DNA of 63,321 nucleotides, the filler included, from Klebsormidium nitens (Eukaryota > Plantae > Klebsormidiophyceae): NCBI GenBank assembly GCA_000708835.1. It is 3 parts of 3 records of this genome, joined end to end, with 100 filler letters (N's around TTAATTAATTAA, not from the genome) between each part and the next. Parts side by side here need not be neighbours in the genome. Positions count along the whole stretch, not along the records: positions 43,381 to 63,321 come from DF237929.1; 2 more parts are not named here. One strand, 5' to 3'. The notes under the pieces were generated by a model. It searched no databases. It saw only the letters and a list, made by a program, of their open reading frames with translations, and was not told the origin of the DNA. A program made the position numbers and the translations under genes. The stretch's first letter is position 1. Each line of letters begins with the position of its first letter. Below are positions 43,381-63,321 of this stretch, piece after piece.

Positions 43381-43565
43381 CTCGGCCGGTAATCTCGGCG
43401 GTCTACCACTAACCACACACTAGTGGACTAACCCTAGACTCTATCCGCGGCGCGCGCGCCGGGCTTGCAAGCCGGCCGCGGCTCGCCCTATCGCCGCCAC
43501 GTGGCACGTCTGCGCCACGTGTCGCTATCTGGACACTACCCGGCACGGACCGCCCTCGGCATGGC
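43381..43565 (-). mobile_element. Fragment of the Gypsy terminal (LTR-like) sequence
   Basis: Reverse-complement match, roughly 80% by eye, to 60280-60461 (for example CTCGGCCGG..ATCT.GGC.GTCTACCACTAACCA.ACACTAGTGG and ACACTACCCGGCACGGAC). Confidence 0.75.
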
Positions 43566-43879
43566 ATTTCAAAGATATATTTGTGCAGAGTCAAGGTTTC
43601 CCTCAGCCTTTAGTAGTCCGCCTCATCGAGACCTACGGGGGCGTTCGACGGCTAACAAATAGTGGACTGAATAGTGTTCTTCCAATTTATCGGAATCGAA
43701 TGCCAGCTTCTGATTTTACAGGAGTTTTAGGGTTGCGCCGCCCGGAACTCTCGACTTCATTTCTATCCATCGCTGAAAGCTAGGGCTCTCTTCAAGGCAG
43801 TTGCAGGTCTCCATTGCGTCCAACATTTGCAGCTCCGAGCGCTCATCATGAGAGAAAAACGGAACGTGCTATGTGCTTT

Positions 43880-44565
43880 TAATGTTGAGGCCCAAAGGTA
43901 GCTTTGCAAAAGGAGAGGGCGCAGGCTCAGGCAGAGGGAGCTTCGGAAATGAAGGAGGCGCAGGCACTGGCTCAATTGTTGGAACCAACAGTCCATAACT
44001 CTCATCTTGCTGCTAGAGTTGCAGCTTATACCCAGGTGCCACATGGTTTCGATTTGGTTCATATAGACCCTTTTTAGTTCATTGACTACAAGGCGGCGCA
44101 AAACGACTCGGGTACTGAAGAAGCGGAAGAGAAGAAAGCAAGGGTTAGAGCGTATATTATGCACATCATCAAGGGGAAGTCGCAGCCACTTTTGCAGCAA
44201 ATTATCACGCGGGTGAGTTTGATGACGATGAAGTTCTAGACATTATGGCCTTGAAGCATTAGAAAGTGCAGGAGTTGGAGGCCATTCTTCAGGAAGGTGC
44301 ACAACAAAACGAAGTGCCTGCAGAGGATGGGGCAAAAGAGCAAGCGATTAGTGAGTGGGATTGGACCATGAGACCAGGGACCGGTGCTGATATGTTCGAT
44401 CTGCTAGCAGCAATCCAGCCGAAGCCCTCTTTGGTTGCAGAAATGGAGGACATTACGCTTGAGCCTCCGACGGAGGGGCAGATGGACGAGCTTCAGGGTT
44501 TCATCCAAGAACTTGCACACCAGAATAGAATGCGGGCACAGGATGGGGCTCAGGTGGAGAGATAG
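43880..44565 (+). pseudogene. Degenerate acidic/coiled-coil coding fragments
   Basis: Protein-like segments (QKERAQAQAEGASEMKEAQALAQLLE; QELEAILQEGAQQNE...MDELQGFIQELAHQNR) interrupted by stops. No domain recognised. Confidence 0.35.
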
Positions 44566-45218
44566 AGCAGCCAATGTTGAGAAACGGAGTTGATTGACGG
44601 CCAAATTGTTGGTTTAGGCTCGATAGATTTGAGCCGTAGGATCGTGAGTTGTGTCGGGTAATATCGACAGTCGGATTGCGGTTTGTTGTGTAATATCGAC
44701 CGTAGAATTAGAGGTTTGTGTCGTGGAGTATCGATCGTCGGATTGCGTTTGAATCGGATTCTGGATCGTGAGATGTGAGTCGAATCGAGTAGAATAGTAC
44801 CCCGACCACTAGTATCTAGTACGGTACTACCGACCACTAGTAGTATAGTGCCCCGGTCACAAGTCCTAGTGGAATATAGGCCGTATTGACAATTGTGAGT
44901 GATAGAGTGACCGGTTGATGGAAAGGAGTCCATATAGTTGAACCGACCAGTGGGTGGTGGAAGTAGATCCGATCTTGCTAGAGTACACCTAGCTACGGGA
45001 TTGGAGTGACTTTGGACTATTATCATGTGACGGTATTCATTCTAAGAGATGCTTGAGAGGAAAAAGGCGCTTCTTTGTGAAGGCGCTTATGTGCAAGGGT
45101 GGTTTGACCCTAGCTTGTGACAAGCATGAGTGGTTGATGTCAACAGCCAAGGCGTAAATCAGTATATTACAAGGAGTTACGAAGCGCCTCCAAAACTCTC
45201 GGGGACAAGGGAAGGCCG

Positions 45219-46768
45219 GTGGCTGGGGCGGCGGTGCTTGCTGCCAGTCCAGCTACAGCTGGCGGCACTGGAAAGGAGAAGGCACAAGGGGGTGCTAGCA
45301 GCAAGGCCGCGATTGGCAAGCATGCAACGACCGCGGGTGAGCAATCCGCTTTCAAGATTTCCAAAGGACCGCATGGGTTCATTTCCCACACTCTGATGTA
45401 TGATCGCTCTTTGGTATACAGTGCGGTCAATCTCAGCTCTAAGCAGCTTATTCCGTTTTCGTGGCAGACGGTTTATTTACAAAAAACGGGTCATGAGTGC
45501 GCTAGGATATTGCACTATTTCAGTTGGAAGCAGCTTATATGGGTCTCTGCTGACTCGAGCTCGAATTCTTGTTTGGAACCCCGGTGCACATGCTCAATAT
45601 GGTGGGCTTTCATCTTGAGTATATATGCACTTGCGGAGACGTTGTGGGCAAAAGGGCGCAAACCTCAAGGCAGCGACAAGCGGCAAGGGAAAGGCACTGG
45701 AGAGTCATACTACACAGGCTGGCAAAGGTACGGAAGTCATGTTCACCTCATTCCGCAGTTCCTACGAGCTTTGGATTTTGAATCTTTGGATATGGATCAA
45801 GCGCACGCTCTACCTTTTGGGCTTTTGCCAGGTTGTGCTTTCATGTTTCAAGCAAGATGCTTCCGGTTAATTCATTGACCATGTTTCGAAAGGCTCCAAG
45901 CGTAAGGCGCCGGAAGGCGCTGCCTCTGGCAATCCCCAACTAGAGAAGAAGGCGCGTCGGTACAGGCCGGACACCCTAACTCTTAGGGGGATCCGCAAGT
46001 ACCAGAAGAGCACGGACCCGCTCATCCCGCGGCTCTCGTTTGCTCGTCTCGTGCACGAGCTATGCGATGCAGAGACTGCCCGGCGACCTGGTACCAACGA
46101 AGACGGCAAGTTTAGGCATGCAGTTCCACCTGGCTTGGAATGCCTAGGTGTTGATACGGCGTGAGCTGAAGCAAGTGGCTAGATCGATCGACGTCTCCAA
46201 GTATGGACGTGGAATATTCAAAAGTGAGCAATTCTTCTTATTTTTGAGAATCGTGCGGATTCGAGGCTGTCACCCCTTTATCATCGTGCTGATCCGAGTT
46301 GGCAAGCTTGCCTCTAGGTAAAAGGCGTCGGCGTTGGACGCCCTGATTAAGGTAAGTCGGGACTTTGTCGTAGGGTTGTTCGGTGACGTGATCTTCTGCC
46401 AGGCGCACGGCAAGCGGAAGACCCTTCACACGAAGGATCTGGACCTAGCGCGCAGGATCCGCGGGATTCGGAACGAAGACAACACTCTGCCCTTGCAAGC
46501 CGCCGTGGAGCACGGCCTTGGGCACAAACGTGAGAAGGTCGGGTACGAGCCCGGCAAAGCGGATGAAAAGAAAAGGAAGTCCGCAAAGCAAACCGAACGG
46601 GAGGCAAGAGAGAGGGCGACAAAGGATGTTAAATGGGTTCAGAAGGCGGAGTTGCAGCGCCAGACGCGAATGGCTGCGGAGCGCGCGGCTCGGGAAGCTG
46701 CGCATGGGCCTCAGGGAGGGGCTAAAAGGTCAAAGCAGAGTGGAAAGAGGGAGAAGAGAGCGGCTTGA
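45219..46768 (+). pseudogene. Divergent histone H3-like gene with Lys-rich N-tail and coiled-coil C-extension, premature stop
   Basis: About 45945-46115 reads [39 protein letters not shown]. After an intron, 46318 onward reads R*KASALDALIKVSRDFVVGLFGDVIFCQAHGKRKTLHTKDLDLARRIRG, aligning to H3 helices aN, a1, a2 and a3. TAA at 46319-46321 falls where W or F is expected. Confidence 0.75.
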
Positions 46769-47988
46769 GAGGGGGGCCAGAACGTCGCCGCGCCAAAGGG
46801 ACGGTGAAGTAGCCTACTAATGATGAGTTGCTATAGGGCGGAAACAATAAACATTGTGCATAAGGGTTCGTCGTCTTGACTTTCGTGATGTAGTGGATCT
46901 CCATTCGTGACAGCATATATAATACTTTTTACAATGGCATACACCAACCAAATTGTATCGATTGCAAAATCAATTTCCCCAATCAAATGACTTGCTTGGA
47001 TAAGGTCACACGATCATGATGTAAGCACGTCGACATGCATCGTACAGTGAACGTTACATACGAGTGGCCTATGTCGGGATTTCTTGGAAACTCCCTCATT
47101 GCATTTCGGGTATTTCGGGGCAAGGTCTCAAAAGACAAGTGGTGCTTGGCAACTAATGTTATCTATTGACGCCGCCTTGCTACGCTACTTGCAACTATCA
47201 TACAACCTCTAGCACGAACGAAGTTTGCTGCTTGCACCGAATGTACAGCTACGCACAATCACAAATTCTATGCTCTTAGAACGTATTTGGGATCTCGTGC
47301 ACGCTATACTGCTCACTTCACAACAGCCCGTGCTTCAAGTGCCATTAGAACAGACTTACTTTCTGCTTTCTATTTTACCGCTTGTGTGTATAAACGCAAT
47401 CGTTGTGTACAATTTCGCACCTTTCCTAAAGTTTGCATACGGCTCCTGTTGCACGCACCGGTCAAGCCACTTTCTTCTCTCCTCTTGCACCTTCCTTGCA
47501 CGATTATGTCCCTTCCCGACGCTTCTTCCGGCTTCCTTATCCCCCTTGGACAACTCCACCCCTCTCTAAGCCTCCTTCTCCGCTTTCTCCCCCTCCACTT
47601 CACCCGAGTTGGAGGCTTCGCTCTCTCCTCCAGGCTTCTCCTTTGCTTCTTTTCCCCTCTTCGTCCCCCGCTTCGACTTCCCTGCGCCTCACTAGGATTT
47701 CTCCAACGTTCCCTCCACCATCTCGGCACGCACCCCAGACGATTTAGCCCCTACGCCAGGCCCCTGCTTCGCTTTCGTCTCTTTGCGTTTCTCAGGTAGC
47801 TTCTCTGTTTCAGCCCCTTCTTCCGGCCCCTGCGCTGTTTGTTTTGCCTTTGTTTTTCCCCTCCGACTTTTCAGTCGCTTTTTTGGGTCGGATCGGGTCA
47901 TGAACGAAAGCAAGGCGGGTTGCATGCTCCCAAAACCATGAAACTTAATAGAGAAAGCTTTTCAGTCCAAATAAACGGCTGCCCATCA

Positions 47989-49197
47989 TCAAAAAAACTT
48001 GCCGGAGGTCGTTCTGTTCGAATACTTGTTGCACAGGCGCTTCACGATCCGAGCGAATGTGCTTCGTGGAATGAGGAAGTCCGTGCTCTTCTGTTTCTTC
48101 CTAAATTCTCTGAGAGCTAAGGTGCCTAGCTTGTACCGCCGCAGCTTCTTCTCGGGCCGAGAGGGCGTGGTCGCCGCCGATGCTTTCTGCCTGCCTCCAA
48201 CCACCGCCTTTCCACTGCCTCCCTTCGCGACCTTCTGCTTCCCCTCCCCAGCTGCCGGGTTCTCGATGGCGCCCGTCGGTGCCACTTTCTTTCTTTTTTT
48301 GGCATCCCTTGAGCCCTTCTGCCCCGTGGCCTCTACTGCCTCCGGCTTACCTGCAAGCACCGCCGCCCAAGCCACCGGCTTCTTGCCCCCCACCACGCCC
48401 CAGACGCTTGATGGCTTCCGACGTGTTGCTTTGCTTCGCCGCTTCTTTTGAGGCTGCTTGCCGGCCGTCACAAGTTCTCTCGAGATCTTCCCGAAGCTTT
48501 TTATTGATGCCTTGTGCTTCTTGTGCTGCTCCGCTGGGTCCACTTCCCAAACAGGCTCTCCCAACATCGAATGCAGCTCCTCCCTTCTTTCTTCCTCAAC
48601 CTCTGCGGGCGCTTCCTCCCCTCGTGCATGCTCCATGAACATCAGGTTTTCTTGGAGCTCCGATTTGGTGGGCGCATCGGGATCGTCTTCCCCTGCATTC
48701 AAGTGTCCGCTTTTAGGAGGATCGTCCTCATCAGGTTCTGAGTCTTGGAAGGGTTTTTCAAATGGAGCATTGTTCCGTGCAATTTCGTCAAGCTCCGCCT
48801 GGTATTCTTCTGGGATCATAATGCCCCGCTCCTTTTGGACTTCTTCCGGAGCCCCTTCCTCTGTCTGCACGGTCACTGGCGGAGGAGATTGCTCCCCGCT
48901 GACTCGCTCTGCAAACTGTGCTTGATAATGAGCTTCTGCCTCCGTTTTATTCTCTCGAGACCACTTTTTTTGCGCAGCTAGAGTTTCCACGTATGACAGA
49001 TAATCCTTTGGTCCCCAGGCGCCTCGAAGGCCAAACTCTTCACGCTCTAGTCTGTCGATTGCAGGTTCGGACTCACTCGGGACTTGCGCCTTCCCCGAGT
49101 TCTCATAGTTACCAACTTCATCCTCCGGCGCGGCCACCTTCTCCGCTTGGTGGCCCCGTTGCAATTTTGGTCGCATGCTGATGCGCGGCCTTTGCAA
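47989..49197 (-). pseudogene. Second H3-like gene: ~340-aa acidic then basic N-terminus plus H3 aN/a1, fold incomplete
   Basis: The ORF ends in KKLRRYKLGTLALREFRKKQKSTDFLIPRSTFARIVKRLC and stops at a T7 run. Helices a2/a3 are not recognisable. K/E-rich degenerate frames continue to about 47356. Confidence 0.7.
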
Positions 49198-49560
49198 ATG
49201 AAGGAAGCGGTGGAAGCTTGCAGCTGATCAAAAGTGGCGCCCTTTAAGCGAAAGAGACCACGAAAAATAACATTTGACAGACTTTTGACGAAGTTGTAAT
49301 GGATTGTTCAATTTTAGGGTTTGTTTAGGGTTTCACACGCTCGGGAATGTCAAACTCCCGCTCTTTTACTTGAATTTGGACGATATAGCTCTGCAACTCA
49401 TGTTGGTCGACTCAAGGCTCCCAAAATCGAAACCGGACGAAAGTCGACGGATAGCGGGCCCCAATATTCGCTGCAATCTGTCAAGCTATCGAAATCGAAC
49501 GCAAATTACGAAATGTCTTGGATAGACTTTTAAAGTCGGCCCATGCACGGCCAAATCTCC

Positions 49561-49596
49561 GGTTGCTTGCATGGTTGCTTGCATGGTTGCTTGCAT
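49561..49596 (+). repeat. Tandem repeat (GGTTGCTTGCAT)x3
   Basis: Three perfect 12-bp units. Confidence 0.9.
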
Positions 49597-50853
49597 GGTA
49601 GGGGTCAAAGTTCGAAGGTGCTCAAAGCAGCTGCGAACATCCATTGGCGTTGCTTCCACTGTGCTTGATAATGAGAGCAGCTGTCCGGTCTTCTAGCGGC
49701 GATGACATTCCAGACGAAGAGCTCAATGGGCTAGAGGACCCAAACATTCTGTCGGAGCAAGCAAATCTGAATCAGCAAGAAGCAGAGGATTTGGAGGCGG
49801 CCGCATACACATGCCACGTACGCGGATTCGCCTGCTTCAAACTCCGCCGAGTCGGCGCATTGTCAGCGCGGTACCACCGCAGTACCAGTTCGACAATTAC
49901 CGTACGGTACTCTAAAATTTCAGGGTCGTATCACGATGACTCCGGGTTCGTACCAAGGTGCTAGTACACTCGCACTGCACTGGCACCGTACTGGCGGCGG
50001 GCAAGAAATTAGGGTTCCGAACAGTGAGCGTAGAGTTGGCAAGCAAACATGGTTTTCAAGCGGCGAAATCGTTCTGAAAGATCTAAACAATGGCTGCGGT
50101 ATGCGCAGCTTGCTCATTCATGCCGCTCTTCAGAAATTTGCAAGCAGCATTGGTTGACAATCTTGAATGCAAAGAAAGCCTTCATTGGGTTTGAGAAAAT
50201 CTTTTAAGGTGCATTTTCAGCTAGTCAACTTTGGATGCCCCTCAAGACGATTCTGAATGTCCCCCTTTTTCTGCTGAGAGCTGCGTGGAGCTGCTCTCTT
50301 AGCTCTTTCAGCTAGTACGGAGCGCACTGGAGACAATGACATACACTCACGTTCAGCCAGTCCAGCTTCCCAGCTTCCCAGCTGATAAGTACCATCCATG
50401 TACCACTTACTGTGCCAGAGTGTTGCAGGCCTTTCTTGCGCCCTAATCGAGCACTCACACGAGCCGTCGATGAGCAGACCGGTGGATGATCCGAAGGCTA
50501 CCAGGTTCCGGCAGGCCTCGACTGTTCGTTAAGGTGGAAGTATGGCAATCAACCGCCTGCAGAACCCTAGGTCACGTTTTGGGTCACGAAATGGTCAAAA
50601 CTCAACCAAAGTGAGTCGAGCTTTTTGCATTGGGTTCGAGAACCCAAGGGGATCCTCTAACCCCAATCTCGAAGTCTTCGGACCCCTCGAGCCATTGCCG
50701 CCATCCGGGATCCTACAACCCAAGAAAACCAGAGGGGGTTCCCTAAAATATTATTCTCCTGACCATATACGATGGGAGCGCATGGCGGAAAGGCGCTTCG
50801 TAGGCTTAGGCCCATGCAGGGATATCCCAAGAATTATGGGGGGGAGAAGCCCG

Positions 50854-51087
50854 NNNNNNNNNNNNNNNNNNNNNNNNNNNNNNNNNNNNNNNNNNNNNNN
50901 NNNNNNNNNNNNNNNNNNNNNNNNNNNNNNNNNNNNNNNNNNNNNNNNNNNNNNNNNNNNNNNNNNNNNNNNNNNNNNNNNNNNNNNNNNNNNNNNNNNN
51001 NNNNNNNNNNNNNNNNNNNNNNNNNNNNNNNNNNNNNNNNNNNNNNNNNNNNNNNNNNNNNNNNNNNNNNNNNNNNNNNNNNNNNNN
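50854..51087. other. Assembly gap
   Basis: N run. Confidence 0.98.
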
Positions 51088-51360
51088 CCACCTTAATACG
51101 GATTTTCAAACTTATACCTACCGTAGATTGTACGTTCGGTATTACGGTACCTAGGCAGGACTACAACCGGTACTTGTTAGGTACCTACTGTAACAGCCTT
51201 CATACCGTGACCGTAGAAATTTGTCCGACCGTACCTAGTACCGTAGGTACCTACCTACTACCTACCTACCTAGCAGCCCTAGCTATCGTACGGTACGGTA
51301 CCTGTCAAGTATACGGTACCTGGTAATTCGGCTACCTAGGTACCCTACTTTTGTACCGAC
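51088..51360. repeat. GTAC/CTAG-rich low-complexity tract
   Basis: Dense GGTACC, GTACCTA and CTAG words. The same vocabulary occurs at 54030-54520 inside the CAC element. Confidence 0.6.
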
Positions 51361-52112
51361 GGTGGGCAGGCTCGACCGGCCTACCGCTGCTGGTGGTTCT
51401 TTCGACCGGGCACCTCTATCTGCCAAGTGTGAAGGTAAAAGAAGGCCCGAGAAGTTAAAAGTTTCCAGGCCGGGAACACTTGTAGCTCTGCGGAGCCAGG
51501 ATTCTTCCAAGAAACCACCGCAAATCGCGGATCTGAACAGAGTTTCACGCAACTTCTGTGCGACCAACACGGTGCCTCTTGAAGATTCTGCACTGCTTTT
51601 GTCGAAAGGAGTGCGGTCCCGACGGGCGGAAATTTGTGCTTTGTGTACACGATACACGGCGGTACCATGCATGGACCGAGGTTGGAGTGTACTAACAGTG
51701 CAGTACCACCGCGCCGTACTCCGTGAAACTTCACGGTCTGAAACCCGCGTACGTGACATGTGTATAGCAAGAGATCGCTCTTGGAAAGGGGACCTCTTGT
51801 TATGTAATCCCCTTGCAGTTTGCAGCCTTTTGAAGACGTTACCGAAGTGACCAAAGAGGAGGAAGAAGACCCATTGCCTTTTGCGCAGATTGCACTCGTA
51901 GAGGACGTCACCAAAGAAGAACACGCAGCTTATGAAGCAGCGCATGTAACGGCACGACTGCGCACCGACTTCTGGCTGCGCGCCAAACTCGCGGCCGCGC
52001 ATCGTCCGTTATTATACGCTATCGACTTATTTGATATATCGAATCACTACACGACACGTGTCTGGGTTACTGCTTCACCGCGTGACCGTCCGATAAGACC
52101 CACGTGCACCGC

Positions 52113-52280
52113 NNNNNNNNNNNNNNNNNNNNNNNNNNNNNNNNNNNNNNNNNNNNNNNNNNNNNNNNNNNNNNNNNNNNNNNNNNNNNNNNNNNNNNNN
52201 NNNNNNNNNNNNNNNNNNNNNNNNNNNNNNNNNNNNNNNNNNNNNNNNNNNNNNNNNNNNNNNNNNNNNNNNNNNNNNNN
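52113..52280. other. Assembly gap
   Basis: N run. Confidence 0.98.
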
Positions 52281-52499
52281 CTTCACCTTGTATTCAACTC
52301 CTCGTATATCGTCTCTCCAGCCCGTATATCTCTCACCCCGAGTCGATTCTGTTCAGCGCCGCTTCAGCGCAGGCTAGAAAGGGTCACCAAAGAAGCACGC
52401 CAGGGGGCAGGCGGCCGCACTAGCGGCATTCCAGGCCGCGAGCAGAGCTCCTCCCCCTCAAATGAGAGAGGGCTAGATAACAGGAAGTCCTTTGCCAAG

Positions 52500-52667
52500 C
52501 TCGGGCCAATAGGAAGGCCGAGGCCTGGTGTCGCGGTGCTTCAAGGGTTCTTGGCAGTGGCATCAGGGGGAAGCAGCAAGGAGAAGGGGAAAGAGCAAGG
52601 TGGCACCAAGAAGGCACCAGCACGGGAGACACCCACCAAGAAGACTCCAGCAGGTTTGAAATCTTGA
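52500..52667 (+). pseudogene. Fragment related to the tail region of the H3-like genes
   Basis: GRPRPGVAVLQ...GGSSKEKGKEQGG resembles GRPVAGAAVLA...GGTGKEKAQGG (about 45205-45290) and KKPVAWAAVLAG (about 48345-48385). No histone fold is seen. Confidence 0.4.
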
Positions 52668-53393
52668 ACGCCTTGCAAATTGCCAGGTCTGCCTTTTTCA
52701 GCTCAATGCCTTTAATTACAGTATTCTAGCGAGCGGGTTGTATCCCAAACAAGTTGCATGAGTGGTTTATGGTAAATGGGCTGTAGAAGTTGAGCTCAAA
52801 TGTGAGCGTTCCATGAGCAATCTAGGCATAGGTGCGAGCGAGTTGTCCCTGAACATGATGCTTGGGCGCCTCCCTAGTACATCAACTGCCAAGTTGTGAT
52901 CAATGCTTTGATACATTCGCAATTTCAGCTAGGAGTTTGTTCACCACTAGATAATTGCTCTCGTTTTAGAGTGGTGGGCGCTCATGTTGATCGTAATGCA
53001 AATGGTTTATTGCAAAATACGAGCACCTCCTTGTTTGTTCTATGAAGAGTTTGTTCAAAAGCAGGTGCATGCTTGCTGAACTGCAAGATCGTGAGGCTCT
53101 TTTTGTCAGCTCAGTGCACTTGGTTTGAGCATTCTAAACAAGCTAGTGCAAAAAAACAGGGGGCAGAAGCAGTTTCTGGTATATGGGCTGTAAAGGTTAA
53201 GCTAATTTTAATGACTTCATGAGCGTCATGGGCATGGTTTGCAAGGGGAGGGTCTCTAAAACACGGTGCTTGCGGCGTCTCTTGGTACACCAACTGCCAA
53301 CTGGTGGTCAATCCTATGGTTTTAGAGCTGCTCCAGCTATTATTGGGAGTTTGACTTGTTGTGCCAACAAGTGTTGCTCGACCACCAAACGAC

Positions 53394-55088
53394 TGTTGAA
53401 AGCAAGCGCCTTTCAAGTGCACAACTACTAGGAATGAGTGTGGTTCTTTTGCTGCATGAGTCCAAGTGATATTGCCTAGCTCAAGTCTAGCAATTACCCC
53501 AGGTGTTTCAATCGATAAATCGACGGTCCCTATTCGATGTTATCTCACGGGATAGTTATGGTGCTTTTTAGCCCGGGGGAAAATTGCCAGAGACCAATTT
53601 AAGTCGGGCGCGCGCCGTAGCATATTCCCACAGTATCGCAAAATTCGGCCGGCGGAACTCCGGTGAGATGTAGGATCTCTGTGGGTACTTCGTGCGATAT
53701 AGCCCCCGTGAAAAGGTCATTTGCCCCCAAATATTGCTCTTCTATTGCATTTTAGCACTGAAAATGGCCTTGAAAGATAGCTACAAAAAGTGCATGTTTT
53801 AGAGACATGTCTGTGGGAAACTTCTACAGTACGTCCATGTTGATGTTGACAAGACATGCTGAAAGTTGAATAGCATTCTCCTAAGCTTTTGTCACAAAAC
53901 TAGAGCCATTCTTCTTCATAATAGCTTTGGTGGTGAACCACCATTCTTCTTGAATTTCGTAGGAAGATGGTCATTTGACACTTTGGTTCCGTCCGGTCAA
54001 AAACGCTCGTAGGTGGGGGCACTTTCCAGTAGGCCGGGATCGGGGTCCCAGGAAGTGAGGTAGGTACTTGAGAACAGAGCTTGTAGGTACGTACCCTGGT
54101 CCCTACCGGTAGGTGGAACCTGTCCCGGGGCCTTGCATACATTACTTACCTATACTGCCGGGCTGCCCGGTGATTCACAACGGTCACGCCAAATTTCAAA
54201 CTCAATTTAGGTAGTACCGTATTGACCGTAGTACCTAGACACGCTAGACACTGCCTAGGTACATTAGTACACCCGTATCTAGGTACCGTACGGTTCGTAC
54301 CTACCACCTTGGTAGCTTGAGGCAAGGCAACAATGTATATCTGAAGGTACCGTACAACCTACCGCAGTCATAAATCTGGCTACAGTACCTAGCAGCTACT
54401 AAATACGGTACCTACCTTAGCTAGTATCTAGCTAGCTAGGTACTAGTGTACCTAGCTACCATACTAGCCTCGGTACCTACCTTGTAGCCTTAGGTTCGTT
54501 GCCTACTGAGCAGTGTAATCTTGCTAATTTGGCCCGAACATGTGTCGAGACTTGCAGTGTTTGTCGCTCCTAAGTAACACTACGGGTACTTTTGCCTGCA
54601 TGCTACAAAGCTAAAAGCGGGTGATTTTCGATACGAACTAGTTTCCGGGGAAATTGCAATCGCAGGAACCGGAACGTCACCAGCCGAATATTGCCCCAAT
54701 TTTCCGGCGGTTCTGCGTGCCGCATGAAATGTTCGGGCGCAGTTCCGGCGAGAGCACGGCGCACGGACAAGTAATTATTCGTGCGAGATTTCCACGCTTA
54801 ACGCGCGAAACCTGCCGCAACTTTCCATTGGGCAGGAGAGCACCGTAATTGCCCGGCCCGTGCTACAAAAGAACCCATCGAACGGCTACACCGAAATACA
54901 TGCCACATAAGAACCCATGAACAATGGACTCAATCCTACGGCTTACGTTTCGCACACCCTACGGTGGATATTCAATCATGCGAGCTCACAATCGTACTGC
55001 CGACCTTATGCATCCAACCTACGATTCTATGGACGATATATCATAGGATATTAGGGCGTACTTAAGGCTAGTACCGCCCAAATCTAAC
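53394..55088 (-). repeat. Copia 3' LTR (about 390 bp, interrupted by a 1.3-kb insertion)
   Basis: On the minus strand it follows the pol stop and the purine tract GTGGGAAGAG, begins GTTAGATTTGGGCGGTAC and ends ...GAAAGGCGCTTGCTTTCAACA. Confidence 0.85.
53556..54862. mobile_element. Non-autonomous DNA transposon with CACGGG...CCCGTG ends inserted in the copia LTR (CMC/EnSpm-like)
   Basis: Absent from the sister LTR (CTATTCGACGATGCCTACAAAAG is contiguous there). Imperfect TIRs, apparent 2-bp TSD CT, no ORF. Confidence 0.6.
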
Positions 55089-55109
55089 TCTTCCCACGCA
55101 CAAAGTATC

Positions 55110-58100
55110 CTATGCAACTCCTATCTCCTTCTTGCAGTTCAGAAACTTTCCGGGTGCCAACGCCTTAGTCAAGATGTCCGCCTTCATGTCCTCCGTTTTG
55201 CAATACGCGAACTCGACTTCCTTCCGCGCCACCCGCTCCCGCGCAAAGTGATGAATCACGTCCATGTGCTTCGATTGCTGCGAAGCGATCGGATGCTTGA
55301 GGAGCCGTATTGCTCCTTGGTTGTTGCAATGAGTCAAGACCGTTCTGAGATCCAACCCCAAGCCTCCCCCGAGTTTCCGAACCACAACGCCTCCTTCACG
55401 GCGTTCCCTGCGCTCATATACTCTGCCTCTACCATCGAGGCCGCCACCGTCGGTTGAATACGGCTCGACCAACCCACCGCTCCCCCGTACATCAAGAAGA
55501 CGTACCCCGTTGAGCGCTTTGTGTCGACGTTCCCCGCATGATCGGCGTCGCAAAACGCCTCAAGGACCTCGCCGCTCCCCCCAAAGGTTATTCGGCTTCC
55601 GCCGTTCCCGCCAAGTAGCGCACCACCCTAAGCGCCGCCGCCCAATGCGCCTCCGTTGGCGCGCTCGTGCAGCGCGCCAAAGCACCCACTGCTTGAGCGA
55701 TGTCGGGCCGCGTGCACACGCTCAAGTACAACAAGCTTCCAATGAGCTCGCTATAGGGGAATCTCGCTGTGTCGAGCGGCTCACCCTCTCTCGTCAACTT
55801 CTCCCCTGCACCAAGGGGGACCGACCGCGCCCGTGCGCCCACCAATCCGTGCCGCCCAAGAAGCTTCCCCGTAAGCTTCTTTTGCGTGAGCTTCAAAGTG
55901 CGCGCCTTCCGGTCGCGCGCCAACTCCATCCCAAGGAAGTAGATCGCCTCCCCCAAGTCGTGCACGTCGAACTTCTCCGTCAAGTGCACCTTTACCTTTA
56001 AAATCCGCTCCGCCCCCCGGGCCGCGACGAGAATGTCGTCCACCCACACAATGAGGTAAACCCGCTCCCCGTCCACCACTCCCGAAAAGAGCGCCGCGTC
56101 CGCCCAAAACGCCACGAACTCAAAGTTCCCGAGCTCCTCCTTCAAGCGCGTGTGCCACGCACGCAGCGCTTGGCGCAACCCGTACAAGGTGCGCTTGAGG
56201 TGGCAAATCACGTTGGGCCCGCCTTGCTCGTACCCTTGCGGTTGTTGCATGTAGATCTTCTCCTCGAGCTCCCCGTTGAGAATCGCCGTCTTGACGTCCA
56301 ATTCATGAAGCTCCAAGTAGCGCTCCGCGACTACCGCTAGGAGCGCCCGCAACGTGGTGTGCTTGCTCACGGGGGAATAGACCTCCTCGAAGTCTATCCC
56401 TTGCTTTTGCAAGTACCCCTTCGCCACGAGTCGCGACTTGTACCGCTCACGTTCCCAAGCGCATCCCGCTTAATCTTGTAAAGGTGGGAACCGGCTTCAC
56501 CCCCTCCGTTTTTTCGACAAGCTCCCACGTCCCGTTCTCCAACAAGGACTGCATCTCCTCGTCCATGGACTTCCCCCAAAGCTCGCTCTTCTCCCCCTAC
56601 GGCTTCTTGATACGTTTGCGGCTCTGGATGCTCCCCCGACCTCTTGGGATGCTTCCCCGTTTCCGCTAGATTCGCTCGGTACCACTCCCCGAGCGCCTGC
56701 CTTTCGCGTGCGGGGTATCTTCTCGCCGTCTCCTCTTGAAGGCCGTCTTCCTCAACGGAATCCTCGCTCTCGGTGTCGGCCTTCCCCGTAGGAGTAGCCC
56801 CTACACCGGGCTAAGTGTCGGCCTCCCCCGAAGGGGTAGCCCCTACACCCATCCGAGTCGGGGATTCACACGACTAGGACCGCGAGCATCTCCCTTCTCC
56901 TTCCCCGGATCAAGCTCAACGATCACGGAGGGCCCGCGCTCATCCACGATGACATCGCGGGAAGTCAAAATCCTACCGGCCCGCTCTCGGAGAACCCGGT
57001 AGGACTTGAAGCTGGGCTCGTACCCCAACAACACCCCTCGCTCGCTCACCGGCCCCATCTTTTTCCGGTTGCCCTTGGGCACGTGGATGTAGGCACCCCC
57101 CCCAAACACCCGCAAATGGCCAAAATTTGGCTTCTTCCCGTAGAACTCTTCTCCCACGGCGTCTTGTCGTGCACGCTCGAAGGAACCCGGCTCCAGGTGT
57201 AGTTGGCCGTGACCATCGCTTCCGCCCACAACTCCGGCTCCAACCGGGCGTCCTCTAAGAAAGCCCGCGCTCTTTCCTCGAGCGTCCGGTTCAATCGCTC
57301 CGCCGAACCGTTTTGTTCGGGAGAGTGCCCCGCCGTGTTGCGGTGCACCGTCCCTCTCTTCCCGAGAAGGGCCGTCATTCCCCCGTTGACGTACTCCCCG
57401 CCCCGGTCCGTTTGCATCCCCTTAACCTTCATTCCGGATTGCAACTCCAAGCGGGCAAACGCGCTCTCCGTGACCGCCGTGGCGTCACTCTTCCGCTTCA
57501 TCGGTTGCACCACCAAAAGCTTGCAATAGTCGTCTAGGAAAGTGGCTAAGTACCTACTCCCCCCCTTTGACGTCACCCGCATGGGCTCGGACACGTCCAT
57601 GTGCATGACCTCGAGGGGTTCTTTGCGATAGCTTGGAGTCTAACTTCCTGGGGAAGGGCTCACGGGTTTGCTTTCCGATGATGCAAGGCTCACACACCGA
57701 GGTTCTTTTGCTCCGGAATGCCTCCGCTTTGACTCCCACACCCCGGACCGCGTCCCCCTCAACCATTTTGATTAGGCTTTCGTACCCGGCGTGCACCAAC
57801 CTCCGGTGCCACAACACCGGGCTCTCGGCGTCTTTCACGAGCAAGCAAGTATCTCCCCACGTTGTCTTCGGTTGACAAACAACGGGCATGCCGTCCGCAT
57901 TCTCTTCGCCCGAAGCACAACCTGTCCATCCATGGAAACCTCGCACACTTTCCCACGGAACACAACCTCGGCTCCTACCGCGGTGGCTTTCTTGACTGAA
58001 AAGAGGTTCTCCGCCACACCGGGAACATAGGCAACCTCACGGAGAAGGTTGACTTGCTCACCTTCCGGCGTCTCGCATTGCAACTCTACCGTGCCCACCC

Positions 58101-58611
58101 CGGCTACTTCAAGGAACCCCTTGTTCCCAAACTTGATTGCGCAAGTTCCCTGCTCAAGCATCTCCAACGTTGAGAGCGAGCTCTTGACCCCCGTCATGTG
58201 TTGGCTAGGCCCCGAGCCAACGATCCACCTTCCGGTCTCCGCACCTTCCCCGGCCACAAAGGCAACCCCTTGCCGGCCACCGGTTTCCCCTTCTTTGGAC
58301 ACCCCTCTTGAAGTGGTCCGGGCTACCGCATATGTAGCACTTCTTTCCCGACGTGGGCTTCTCTGTCTCACAAGATCCGGACCGGCACTCTCTCTCAAAG
58401 TGCCCCAACTTACCACACTTGTGGCAAGCCATGGAAGCCTTCCTTGGGCCACCCTTGCCCTTGCCGGCAAAGTTGCCACCCTTGGCCGCGTAGGCCACCG
58501 CCGAGCCCGAGGCCCCGCTATCTAGCTCCCCAAGAAGCCCATGCCTTTGTCAAACACTTGCAACGTGGAAAGAAGCTCTTCCACCTTGTGAACCTTGAGC
58601 CCTTCAGCCAT
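55110..58611 (-). pseudogene. Copia gag-pol with frameshifts and a gag deletion
   Basis: MAEGLKV start; CCHC knuckles CHKCGKLGHFERECR and CYICGSPDHF; protease WIVGSGPSQHMT; WHRRLVH...CEPCIIGK; integrase HMDVSEPM, TDRGGEY, NGSAERLNRTLEE; RT AKGYLQKQGIDFEEVYSP, LDVKTAILNG, VWVDDIL; RNase H SKHMDVIHHFARE...ADILTKAL. Confidence 0.93.
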
Positions 58612-58867
58612 GGTTATAGCTAGCAAAAAACAACGCTTCTCCGGCTGGGCACTCCTTTGTGCGTAGAGTGGTTTGTGGGTATTTTCACCGGCGTCGCGAG
58701 ATGGAGTGCTACTCCACTTCTTTAGCCCCCACTGGAATACCTCTCACCAACCTAGAATTGTTGTTGCTAGCAACGGCTTACTATTCTCCTCTCACTCCAC
58801 AGCATTTTGGGCCCAAAACTGTTGAAAGCAAGCGCCTTTCCCCCCCCCCCCCTTTTCCGGGGGTCAC

Positions 58868-59280
58868 CTTTTTGGGCGGTACTAGCGGTATTAGCGGTAC
58901 TAGCGATACTAGGCGGTACTATCTTAAGCACGCCTTAATATCCTATAACATATCGTCCATAGAATCGTAGGTTTGATGCATAAGGTAGGCCGTAAGATTG
59001 TGAGCTTGCATGATTGAATATCCACCGTAGGATGTGCGAAACGTAAGCCGTAGGATTGAGTCCATTGTTCATGGGTTCCAACTTTTGTGATGTGTATTTC
59101 GGTGTAGCCGTTCGATGGGTTCTTTTGTAGGCATCGTCGAATAGGGACCGTTGATTTATCGATTGAAACACTTAGGGTAATAGCTAGGCTTAAGCTAGGC
59201 TATAAGACTTGGACTCATGTAGCAAAAGAACCACACTCATTCCTAGTAGTTGTGCACTTGAAAGGCGCTTGCTGTCAACA
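58868..59280 (+). repeat. Second copia LTR, in opposite orientation, with a 9-bp (GCGGTACTA) microarray at its start
   Basis: Reverse complement of the 53394-55088 LTR, roughly 85-90% identical by eye. A 21-bp LTR end in the normal orientation lies at 58820-58840, followed by a C run. Confidence 0.85.
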
Positions 59281-60128
59281 ACGACGTCGCGCTACCATCC
59301 CAAGTCGAACGGGCTGACGGAGAGGCTGGTGCGGACGATCAAGGCGGGCATCACCAAGTTCGGGTCGGAAGCGGGCCGGCGGACGTGGGACGAGTGGCTG
59401 CCGTGGATGGTGATGGGCTATCGGATGAGCCGGCAGGCGGCGCTCGCGGGCTACTCACCGTACTTTCTGACCGGAAACCCATGCTGGCATGCGCGACGGA
59501 GCAGAAGTTACTCGGTGAGACGGTCGATTTCGATTCCTCGAATGTGTGGATGCAGCCGTGTGAGCAACGGGCGGCGGCACTGAACAAGGAGATGCCCTTG
59601 GCGCTGGGGTACCTGCTGTCGGCGCAACATCGGGATCGGCGACGATATGAGCACGTGCGGAACAGCGGATAACGGCCGCGGGAGCGGAAGTTTGAGACGT
59701 GGTGTTCCTGCCACGGCAGCCAGGGGACAATACAGATCTTGGTGACGAGGGGCGCATACAAGGTGCACCAGGTAGGGGCGAATGGACGACTTGTGTTGCT
59801 GGGCGCTGACGGCACGCTCTTCAAGGAGCACTCGGAGAACTGCGCCTCCTCCCATAACCCCAACATCGACCTCACCGTCGACTCGACGCTGACGGGCGTG
59901 CCGGCAAGCCACGCGTGCCAAGTCTGCAAGAGCGCCGGCAACCCCAGCATGATGCTGCTCTGCGACTACAGCCTGGAGGGGTACCACATGGGTTGCCTGG
60001 AGCCGGCGGTGAAGAAGGTCCCAGACGGCATGTGGATGTGCCCGAGGTGCCGAGAAGCGGAGGCGCAGCGTGTGTGGCTCGCTTTGGCCTCAGGGTCCGC
60101 AGCCGGCGAGTGGGGGAAACCTGGATAG
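59281..60128 (+). pseudogene. Ty3/Gypsy integrase C-terminal half with a terminal PHD finger (frameshifted), 5' remnant at 53347-53393
   Basis: TTSRYHPKSNGLTERLVRTIK...WDEWLPWMVMGYRMSRQAALAGYSPYFL, then CQVCKSAGNPSMMLLCDYSLEGYHMGCLEPAVKKVPDGMWMCPRC. It joins in frame to EFDLLCQQVLLDHQT across the copia insertion. Confidence 0.85.
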
Positions 60129-61790
60129 GCCCAGTCGAACAGGGTCATTTGTTCATTCTCATCATGTCGCGAGGAGTCAAGGGTCGAGTTGGCCGTACAT
60201 AGCCATTGCCGGCAGGGAAAGATGTGTGTGATTAGGCCCAATGCTAGCCGGCAGAGGAGACGAGGCCGCACGGCAGCTGCCATGCCAAAGATTGTCCGTG
60301 CCGGGTAGTGTCCGGATTGCGACACGTGGCGCTGAAGTGCCATGTGACAGCGATAGGGCGAGCCGCGAACGGCTTGCAAGCGTAGCGCGCGCGTCGCGGG
60401 CAGCGTCAAGGGTTAGGCCACTAGTGTCTGGTTAGTGGTAGACGGCCAAGATAACCGGCCGAGTCTAGGGTACGAGACCAGAGCCTATGATTGAGACTCG
60501 TGCCGGCCGAACACATAGGGCCAAGGAGAGGTGATCCCTTCACTTCTCTTTGGCAAGTCTCCATAGCTAGGCGCTGCGAGCATAGGGCGCTAGTGGTCAT
60601 TGCGTAGTGTAGCGAGCTTATTGACAGCGGGAGTGTGAACAGTAGCGAAGGTTCTCGTCCTTTCAGGTGAGTGCGGGAAAAAGCGCTGTCAGCTCATGTG
60701 GTGCGCATGATTGGAGCCGCAACCACGAACAAGAGAGAAGTCACGATGTCCATAAGCATTGCATGATCGGTGATGTGCATGGTGCATGAGAGAGTGCAAG
60801 GAGATCTCTAGCACTTGTGCGCCTCCACGCCGCCGTGTAAGGTTCAACACGCCATCACTCGATAGGCCCGGTCGAATAAGGTAATTTGTTCATTTTCATC
60901 ATGTCGCAAGGAGTCAAGGGTCGAGTAGGCGGCCGTACATAGCCATTGCCGGCAAGGATAGATGTGTATGATTAGGCCACGTGACCGTTCCCGATGCCAG
61001 CCGGCAGGCACAAGCTACCTAGGGTGGGTATCGGGGGTATCGATCGCATTACGATTTGGTCACAAATTTGTATCACCGGTGTTACGCGTCGCGACAATTT
61101 TCGATCGCGGACCTGACGATTGTACTCGGCAGTACTTGAGAACCGGGTCCGAGTTCATGAATCGCGAATTATTTGACAGGCCGATGATTGGAGAGACCTG
61201 TACTTTTCGGCGGTACTATACCGTCGCGCCAGACCCAAGTCTGAAATTTCAAATTTATGGTTTCGGTCGGAACTTCCGACTCCAACCACGCAAGGGTACC
61301 GCGGTACCTAGGCTGGAAGAAGAGTGCAGGAACTCGAAAGAGAAGTGTAAGAGAACGCGCTTTTCAAAAACCAACAATGGCGTCCAACTTTGCGCCTCGT
61401 ATGCAGATTCTTCAGATTTGTCCTCAACAAAACAAGCACTTGTAGCTTCAAAGGACTCCTAATGACGCTCTCCCAACATTTTTTTATGCTTGTCAAAGGC
61501 TTCTAAATGCTGCATAAGCCTAAGCTTTGAGCACTATTTTATGCTTCATTCAAAGTGTGAAACATAACACTATCTTACATTTTTATCACACCGACTCACG
61601 GCCGAGCGAAAATTCCTAAGTACTCGTACCGTACGTGTAACACAAATGTGAGTCGTCGTAACGCAAACCGCAAGTTACACTGACGAAATTTGATACCCGG
61701 TATCACATTTTTGTCGCGAATCGAGTCAAAATCAACTCGGCCGGTACCCACCCTAGGTAGCTTGTGGGGGAGACGAGGCCGCACAGCACT
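60121..61790 (+). repeat. Gypsy 3' terminal (LTR-like) region with an internal ~150-bp direct duplication
   Basis: Follows the purine tract GAGTGGGGGAAA. 60124-60272 recurs at 60861-61008 plus 61767-61787. Confidence 0.6.
61009..61766. mobile_element. Non-autonomous DNA transposon with 25-bp TIRs (CMC/EnSpm-like)
   Basis: TIR CACAAGCTACCTAGGGTGGGTA(T/C)CG at both ends. It splits the second copy of the repeat GCCGGCAG|GGAGACGAGGCCGCAC, with an apparent 2-bp TSD GG. Confidence 0.75.
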
Positions 61791-63321
61791 TCCTAAAATG
61801 GTCTTTTACGCCACCCAGGCGCCCCCCAGGCGTTCAACTTTTAGCCATTCCATCGACGATCCGCACTCATCTGGATTATGCATTCTGGGATGATTTTGGG
61901 ATTGCACAGCTGACCCACAGGGAGTTGCTCATGCACACAGGCTGTGAAGTCAATCCAATAGAGATCATTTCATTTGGGAATGGTTTGGAGCCATGCTTCA
62001 ACATCCGGATTGCAATCAATTCCACAGGGATCACAACTACTCCATGCAGTAACACTTTTCAGGGGTTTGCCAAAACGTGGTTTACATTATGGTTGTAGAC
62101 AATTAATCCTCTTTAATACATTAAGTCCAATTCAGCAGCTGAGATCTCTCTGTGATTCACAGATTCAGCAACTTGGACAATCATCATAAGAATTCTGCAT
62201 GCCTTTCTCAGGTCGCAAACCTGAGTTATACATGCATCTATTCTGATTTGTCCTCGTTTTCATAATCGAATCTACACTAAGCTAGCTATCTAGGGAGAGT
62301 CCCCAACCACATTACAAATCAGCCAGACCTGCTGATCTACTTTGAGACCGCCCCCAGTTGCTTCGCCAACAGTGACACGCCTGAGAGCCTTGTTAGGATT
62401 TCGAAGCCACCACACAGCCTCCACCACCTAGAACAACACCATACTAACAAATTTGATTAATTCCTTCGAGGTATCCCAATCAAACAGTAAATTCTCCTTT
62501 TTTGCAAAAAACCCATCAAAACTCACTTTTCTCTGCAGAATGTTTGTGAAACTGTATCTTTCTACCACTTCCATCTGCAACTTTACATTCCAAAACAGCG
62601 TAGAGCCCTTCACAAATAATTCTTTCCCCTGCCAATCACAACAGTATTAGGACGAATTTAAATCCATACTAACCTTCTACCTCCAAATCTTATTTTATTT
62701 GCACTACCCTTGGCAGCTGCAGCCGACTCTCCAACCACTTCAGCCTGCTATTTAGCTACCCCGACCACTTCGCGCCACCAATAGCCGCAAAAACCCTGCA
62801 ACTTCACAATACCTAGCACTGATATATATTTTCGGTTAAACAATCCACGCCAATCAATAGATTCATCCACATAAAATTGAACATTTTTGAAACGAAATTT
62901 GCAAAAACTCATGGTCCTCTCTGCCACCTCACATCCTAAACGCCTTGTCATTACAAAACCAAGCGGCTGGCAGGCACCAGAGGCCACGAGGCCTTTTACA
63001 CAACTTCCATTCAATCTGGTGAAATAAAATTGTTCTAATAAAATTCAAAATCCACTTTGCCCGTATGGCTTGATCAATATAATTAGCAAGTTCTGCTAAT
63101 GGTAGAGCCTTTTCTTGTAGCCCCTATCGTTATTATCAAACTTAGAACTATAAGATCCTAGAACCCCATTGATTCTTACTAGCTTCTCACATCCAACATC
63201 GTGCAACCCACTTGCCTAGTACTCTCTACCGGCAATTTTCATAGCCATCTTTGCGACCCTTCCGCCCTGGTAGTAGCACGAAAATGGTTCCAGATCAACA
63301 TAGGGGAGAACTCGTTGTAGG

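Follow-up and report, generated by a model that had tools for sequence, protein, structure and literature searches.

A Copia element with inverted long terminal repeats in Klebsormidium nitens: evidence for a single insertion through two U5 ends

How does an element that carries the enzymes of an ordinary Ty1/Copia retrotransposon come to lie in a genome with its two long terminal repeats (LTRs) inverted and with the same LTR end at either border? This question is raised by a unit of 5.9 kb in a stretch of DNA from Klebsormidium nitens (assembly GCA_000708835.1), which comprises 63,321 nucleotides in three joined parts and is referred to here as the window. The piece analysed spans window positions 43381-63321, about 20 kb of scaffold DF237929.1, and all positions given below are those of the window. 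We report that the unit is one insertion with a 5-bp target-site duplication, that its entry through two LTR ends of the U5 (unique 5′) type is well supported, and that it is probably a rare outcome of a copying error, a dead end in itself and not a new kind of element.

The inverted arrangement is evident from the terminal 21 nucleotides of the LTR, which occur exactly three times in the piece, at 53394-53414 and 58820-58840 on the plus strand and, with a single A/C difference, at 59260-59280 on the minus strand (0.01 matches expected by chance, as estimated with shuffled sequence). The outer two copies point toward each other, and two inverted arm pairs were detected, one between 53394-53537 and 59137-59280 with 92% identity, the other between 54863-55078 and 58912-59130 with 91% identity. 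On the left, the 3′ LTR of the element lies on the minus strand and consists of a part on the U5/R (repeat) side at 53394-53545, whose outer terminus reads TGTTGA on the plus strand, and a part on the U3 (unique 3′) side at 54863-55082. On the right, a complete LTR on the plus strand (58871-59280) is reversed relative to the element and has its U5 terminus at 59280. The two LTRs are 91-92% identical from their common U3 start (TTTGGGCGG, at 55082-55074 in the 3′ LTR, where the homology to the other LTR stops) to the U5 end, with about 27 substitutions in 360 aligned bases. Both outer termini represent the ..TCAACA end of U5, with a precise ..CA on each side, which is abnormal because a normal minus-strand insertion would put the U3 start at the right junction. 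Instead of the two directly oriented LTRs of a Ty1/Copia element, we found inverted LTRs and a direct stump at 58820-58840 on the minus strand, a normally oriented U5 end of 21 bp that is the sole remainder of the direct 5′ LTR.

An initial annotation, made from the sequence alone, had proposed that both outer ends are the same LTR end facing inward, and that 21 bp of LTR in normal orientation beside the position of the primer-binding site are followed by a C run and a full LTR in reverse. The three positions of the 21-mer and the inverted arms bear out the former proposal, and all parts of the latter were seen as claimed. While this layout is correct, it passed over a filler of about 18 nt next to the C run and an insertion of about 1.32 kb in the left LTR (53546-54862). 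The latter splits the 3′ LTR, is not present in the inverted LTR and ends in CACGGG..CCCGTG; CT is found on both sides of it, and GGTACC and CTAG are frequent in its core (54200-54490). The block probably represents a small element that inserted later.

The whole unit is bracketed by the direct repeat ACGAC, which adjoins both termini without any intervening base (53389-53393 and 59281-59285), as had been noted in the initial annotation. This 5-bp target-site duplication is what is expected of a Ty1/Copia element and equally of a complex insertion arising by template switching and flanked as a whole, 5 bp being the target duplication length of Copia/Ty1 elements (PMC1950507, PMC2939329). We reconstructed the empty site by deleting 53394-59285 in silico and compared the result via tblastn with integrase fragments from a set (P0121-P0128) that had been obtained by a word search with the right flank, showed up to 94% identity and continued across the site uninterrupted. 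After the deletion, P0121, P0122, P0123 and P0125 each produced one gapless alignment across the join, as illustrated by P0121 with 70 identities in 77 positions (E 8e-47; ..LLDHQTTSRYHPKSNG.. versus ..LLDHRTTSRYHPKSNG..). Exactly two threonines are present at the join, matching the prediction from a 5-bp duplication, and in the undeleted sequence the same integrase proteins break at 53394 and 59281. Because four integrase fragments align without gaps once 53394-59285 is removed, we conclude that a single insertion, accompanied by a 5-bp duplication, accounts for the 5.9-kb unit; the same alignments provide independent support for the earlier claim that removal of the unit restores an integrase reading frame. 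The exact duplication, the gapless empty site in four integrases and the precise ..CA termini together give good support for a single-unit insertion through two U5-type ends.

At its inner border, the reversed LTR meets the element head to head. Read along the plus strand, the internal region is followed by a 14-nt palindrome, the 21-bp U5 end, 12 further C residues, about 18 nt of filler and the U3 start of the reversed LTR, the extra C residues and the filler occupying 58841-58870. The resulting run of 13 C (58840-58852) is the only homopolymer of at least nine bases in the piece. A 9-mer scan of the piece for the source of the filler gave chance-level matches only, and no Rfam or tRNA matches were obtained for the filler and junction. 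The U3 start of the reversed LTR lies within 0-2 nt of that of the 3′ LTR, and the reversed copy lacks all element sequence from the purine-tract side upstream of the 3′ LTR, which indicates a precise LTR unit and not a random fragment. The reversed LTR has five tandem copies of a 9-nt unit (GCGGTACTA) at its U3 start (58876-58921), as against about one in the 3′ LTR. The primer-binding site is expected, on direct reading, at 58805-58819 on the minus strand; 58805-58818 is occupied by the perfect 14-nt palindrome, and no TGG-type tRNA site is recognisable there on direct reading. The palindrome has 8 nt in common with the U3 start at 58870-58877.

The internal region (55083-58804, minus strand) identifies the element as Copia, since Pfam domains on the minus strand appear in the order protease, integrase, RVT_2 and RNase H that is diagnostic for Ty1/Copia elements. 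In the reading direction of the element, all on the minus strand, Pfam detected a zinc knuckle (58205-58498), a Pol beta-barrel protease (within 57835-58479), gag_pre-integrs (57554-57946), rve (57046-57606), a retroviral SH3 domain (56843-57229) and RVT_2 (55588-56427). These are followed by an RNase H-like tail (55116-55591), which matches Copia fragment P0129 by tblastn, the pol stop (55110-55112) and a purine tract (55088-55095). The tblastn matches to Copia fragments P0129 and P0094 agree with the Copia assignment. The closest named protein relatives of the piece come from the charophyte alga Klebsormidium nitens, with reverse transcriptase fragments at 76-85% identity. The coding region contains many frame changes and in-frame stops, and the gag segment (58430-58805) lacks approximately the N-terminal 180 residues, with the first ATG at 58612 and about 60 codons ahead of the zinc knuckle. 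The truncated gag may be either that of a deleted derivative or an additional scar of faulty copying. The element is an old, dead Copia copy.

To account for this anatomy, we infer that the Copia integrase probably joined the two U5 termini of an abnormal head-to-head product of complementary DNA (cDNA). One arm of the inserted DNA would have been the minus-strand element, with its 5′ LTR reduced to the terminal 21 bp, and the other a full LTR in the opposite orientation, with the arms joined from U3 terminus to U5 remnant via a short non-templated or foreign filler, namely the 12 C and the following ~18 nt. The second arm might once have been a whole inverted copy, which later collapsed to a solo LTR. 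A Copia-type integrase, needing little beyond a terminal TG..CA, would have treated the identical termini no differently from a regular pair, making its usual 5-bp staggered cut. The product would have been unable to replicate, because an inverted 5′ LTR yields no R-to-R transcript, and would then have decayed in place by accumulating about 8% LTR divergence, frameshifts and the 1.3-kb insertion in one LTR. Like the frameshifts and the secondary insertion, the LTR divergence is compatible with an element long resident at this site, and it also allows for two different parent LTRs.

The head-to-head DNA itself may have arisen by different routes. Once the second strand transfer is complete, the minus strand has to copy the plus-strand strong-stop DNA, and its own 5′ end is displaced in the process. 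It could have switched after 21 nt to a minus-strand LTR template and continued to the 5′ end of that template, which would account for the exact order of parts and for a precise U5 terminus, with the C run perhaps added as a non-templated tail. Alternatively, a processed U3 end may have attacked the molecule to which it belonged, at a point 21 bp away from the primer site, creating a fold-back whose replication would give an inverted dimer with two U5 ends, one arm of which collapsed to a solo LTR; this one-ended self-attack leaves the filler unexplained. It is also conceivable that two cDNAs from one particle were each used by integrase through their U5 ends, while their free ends were joined with filler by the end-joining system of the host, followed by formation of a solo LTR. 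All of these routes fit the anatomy, and the data cannot choose among them. The proposal of the initial annotation, that an aberrant second strand transfer or a fold-back made a cDNA with two U5-type ends which integrase still accepted, is thus upheld for the single insertion through two U5 ends, but the cause it named, although plausible, is indistinguishable from cDNA joining or a collapsed inverted dimer.

Several points count against this explanation. It is built on a single copy in a gapped draft scaffold, and the inner junction coincides with the only long homopolymer of the piece. The filler has no recognisable source within the piece, and the LTRs differ by about 8%, so that a common origin in one cycle of reverse transcription cannot be demonstrated. 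Each of the routes to a duplex with two U5 ends also needs at least one unusual step, none of which is documented for Copia in the literature searched.

Regarding the quality of the scaffold, runs of N at 50854-51087 (234 bases) and 52113-52280 (168 bases) mark it as a gapped draft, which bears on the trust to be placed in repeat junctions. We therefore have to consider that only the outer junctions are real and that the C-run join was created by mistake during assembly or gap filling, in which case the actual interior would differ or be longer, as with a full head-to-head dimer or with unrelated sequence. The N gaps are of estimated size and typical of short-read scaffolding, the junction falls on the sole homopolymer of nine or more bases in 20 kb, and repeats of one family are involved. 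Yet the 13-nt run alone is too short to serve as an assembler overlap, and it is enclosed by unique sequence, with the 21-mer and internal region to its left and the filler to its right, and we regard such an error as unlikely. The use of two U5 ends would stand even if the join at the C run were wrong, because an error in the interior cannot convert a direct-LTR insertion into a right junction at which a U5 end is followed by the matching duplication and by host sequence in frame. A succession of common events appears still less probable, although nesting, solo-LTR formation and deletions are all frequent, filler DNA is typical of end-joining deletions and the 8% difference between the LTRs would call for no separate explanation. 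In this case, a plus-strand solo LTR, or an element later reduced to one, would have been present at ACGAC, a minus-strand copy would have entered the identical 5 bp, and a deletion with filler would have removed the 5′ LTR of the latter except for 21 bp, together with the middle copy of the duplication. This demands two insertions into an identical 5-bp target and a deletion whose right edge stops 0-2 nt from the U3 start, and the junction contains no third ACGAC, nor any trace of one.

The breakpoint-like appearance of the 21-bp remnant with its filler would also be compatible with a normal insertion whose 5′ LTR was afterwards duplicated in place and in inverted orientation, for example by replication fork switching, as fold-back inverted duplications with filler do occur in genomes. 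Such a duplication would have had to end exactly at the boundary between LTR and target duplication with a complete U5 terminus and to start at the exact U3 start, and since random breakpoints rarely do both, we consider it very improbable. Hardly credible at all is a propagating Copia subfamily with inverted LTRs as its standard architecture, because an inverted 5′ LTR cannot supply the terminal R repeat required for the first strand transfer according to the established mechanism. Elements with inverted terminal repeats do exist in the form of DIRS (PMC7192593, PMC3950715), and nothing beyond one copy speaks for a corresponding Copia subfamily. Unlike DIRS, the unit has a DDE integrase and a 5-bp duplication, the leftover 21 bp of a direct 5′ LTR and the filler next to them mark a rearrangement and not a design, and no further copy of the inverted-LTR unit was found within the piece. 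In searches for other family copies, exact matches to the LTR 21-mer were absent from metagenome contigs, viral contigs and prokaryotic genome contigs, and the relatives obtained when metagenome contigs were scanned by protein had at most 59% identity and were of no use for LTR comparison.

Some further candidates were rejected on the anatomy of the unit. The 21-bp terminal inverted repeat is not a normal LTR feature, as the 3′ LTR is devoid of the 21 bp at its U3 end, and a simple inversion in place would have moved the 21 bp instead of duplicating them in both orientations. Self-priming of minus-strand strong-stop DNA would invert R-U5 only and not U3, and recombination between inverted LTRs of nested copies would leave the outer junction unchanged.

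If the assembly is right, the joining of two U5 ends of a head-to-head cDNA product would be natural evidence that a Copia integrase can pair two identical U5 ends for a normal concerted insertion, and that reverse transcription or the handling of cDNA before integration can yield head-to-head LTR products. It appears doubtful that inverted-LTR U5/U5 insertions represent a recurrent class of LTR-retrotransposon products, generated when the growing strand jumps to the displaced one as the LTR is being completed, or when cDNA folds back. If they did, annotation would systematically miss such copies, as LTR finders demand direct repeats, and the present copy would be the first dissected natural example of concerted U5/U5 integration by a Copia integrase in vivo. 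Copies of this type form long inverted repeats and can seed hairpin RNAs and genome instability. The wider weight of the present case is limited, as it is a single, old and dead copy, and as a one-off structural variant the unit is modestly interesting.

The flanks into which the unit was inserted are a remnant of an rve-type integrase with a downstream PHD finger, both parts lying on the plus strand. The left part (53338-53393) was delimited by tblastn with P0121 and P0122, and the host integrase is recognisable only from about 53338 onward; the right part (59286-60128) contains the catalytic-Glu motif YHP..NG..ER. Pfam and PDB scans of the isolated flank pieces were too weak, and the integrase was identified instead by the homologues from the word search; the members P0138 and P0132 of this integrase cluster carry Pfam rve. 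The PHD finger follows after a frame change, in the open reading frame (ORF) at 59739-60128 (Pfam E 1.2e-9), and its location beside the host remnant suggests an integrase with a chromatin-reading C-terminal module. The initial annotation had called the host integrase Gypsy; the evidence reaches as far as an rve-type integrase, and a scan of the larger flanking ORFs revealed no reverse transcriptase. A direct repeat of about 120 nt lies downstream of the integrase remnant at 60121-60238 and 60858-60978, 737 bp apart, and a 186-nt inverted repeat with 85% identity (43381-43566 and 60278-60463) brackets most of the piece. A 402-aa ORF on the minus strand (47989-49197) encodes a long acidic/basic N-terminal region and a terminal H3-like histone-fold segment (Pfam Histone, E 1.8e-8); it could represent a centromeric-H3-like gene or a captured fragment.

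Compared to known systems, the unit agrees with ordinary Ty1/Copia elements in the presence of a Gag zinc knuckle, protease, integrase, RVT_2 and RNase H in Copia order, as well as in the 5-bp duplication, the LTR ending in ..CA and the purine tract before the 3′ LTR. It differs from them by its inverted LTRs, by U5 at both outer termini, by a 5′ LTR cut to 21 bp and, on direct reading, by the lack of a recognisable tRNA-type primer site. Searches of the openly searchable literature for inverted LTRs led, apart from DIRS, to a single integrase-type element, a guppy endogenous retrovirus for which they are mentioned in passing (PMC5210030). Inverted terminal repeats are a standard feature of DIRS elements only, which use a tyrosine recombinase and create no target duplication (PMC3950715, PMC7192593). 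The unit resembles them in its inverted terminal repeats, but it contains an rve (DDE) integrase core with gag_pre-integrs and is flanked by a 5-bp duplication, both of which set it apart from DIRS.

Complex Copia insertions within one 5-bp duplication have been ascribed to faulty reverse transcription or template switching, always with direct LTRs (PMC1950507; bioRxiv 10.1101/452573). The complex elements of Sabot and Schulman 2007 (PMC1950507) and those of the rice survey share with the unit an abnormal multi-LTR Copia structure and a single 5-bp duplication, and are likewise read as single-step insertions. In contrast to the three direct LTRs, two internal domains and near-identical outer LTRs of the Sabot and Schulman type, the unit has two inverted LTRs (~92%), placed head to head with filler, and one internal domain. 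Retroviral autointegration yields inverted circles, which are dead ends and not inserted into chromosomes (PMC2644782). It resembles the one-ended self-attack considered above, in that activated cDNA ends attacking their own DNA can invert segments, but integrase chemistry would not leave a filler as found in the junction described here. The closest precedent for the insertion step itself is provided by yeast Ty1 integrase, which inserts foreign DNA sharing only the terminal TG..CA and generates 5-bp duplications (PMC2939329). It accepts any pair of ends with the right terminal dinucleotides, as the use of two U5 ends would require, although this was an overexpression experiment in yeast as opposed to a natural, ancient event in the green lineage. 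A single concerted reaction on two U5 ends is the economical reading of the unit, and in view of the yeast precedent it is chemically unsurprising.

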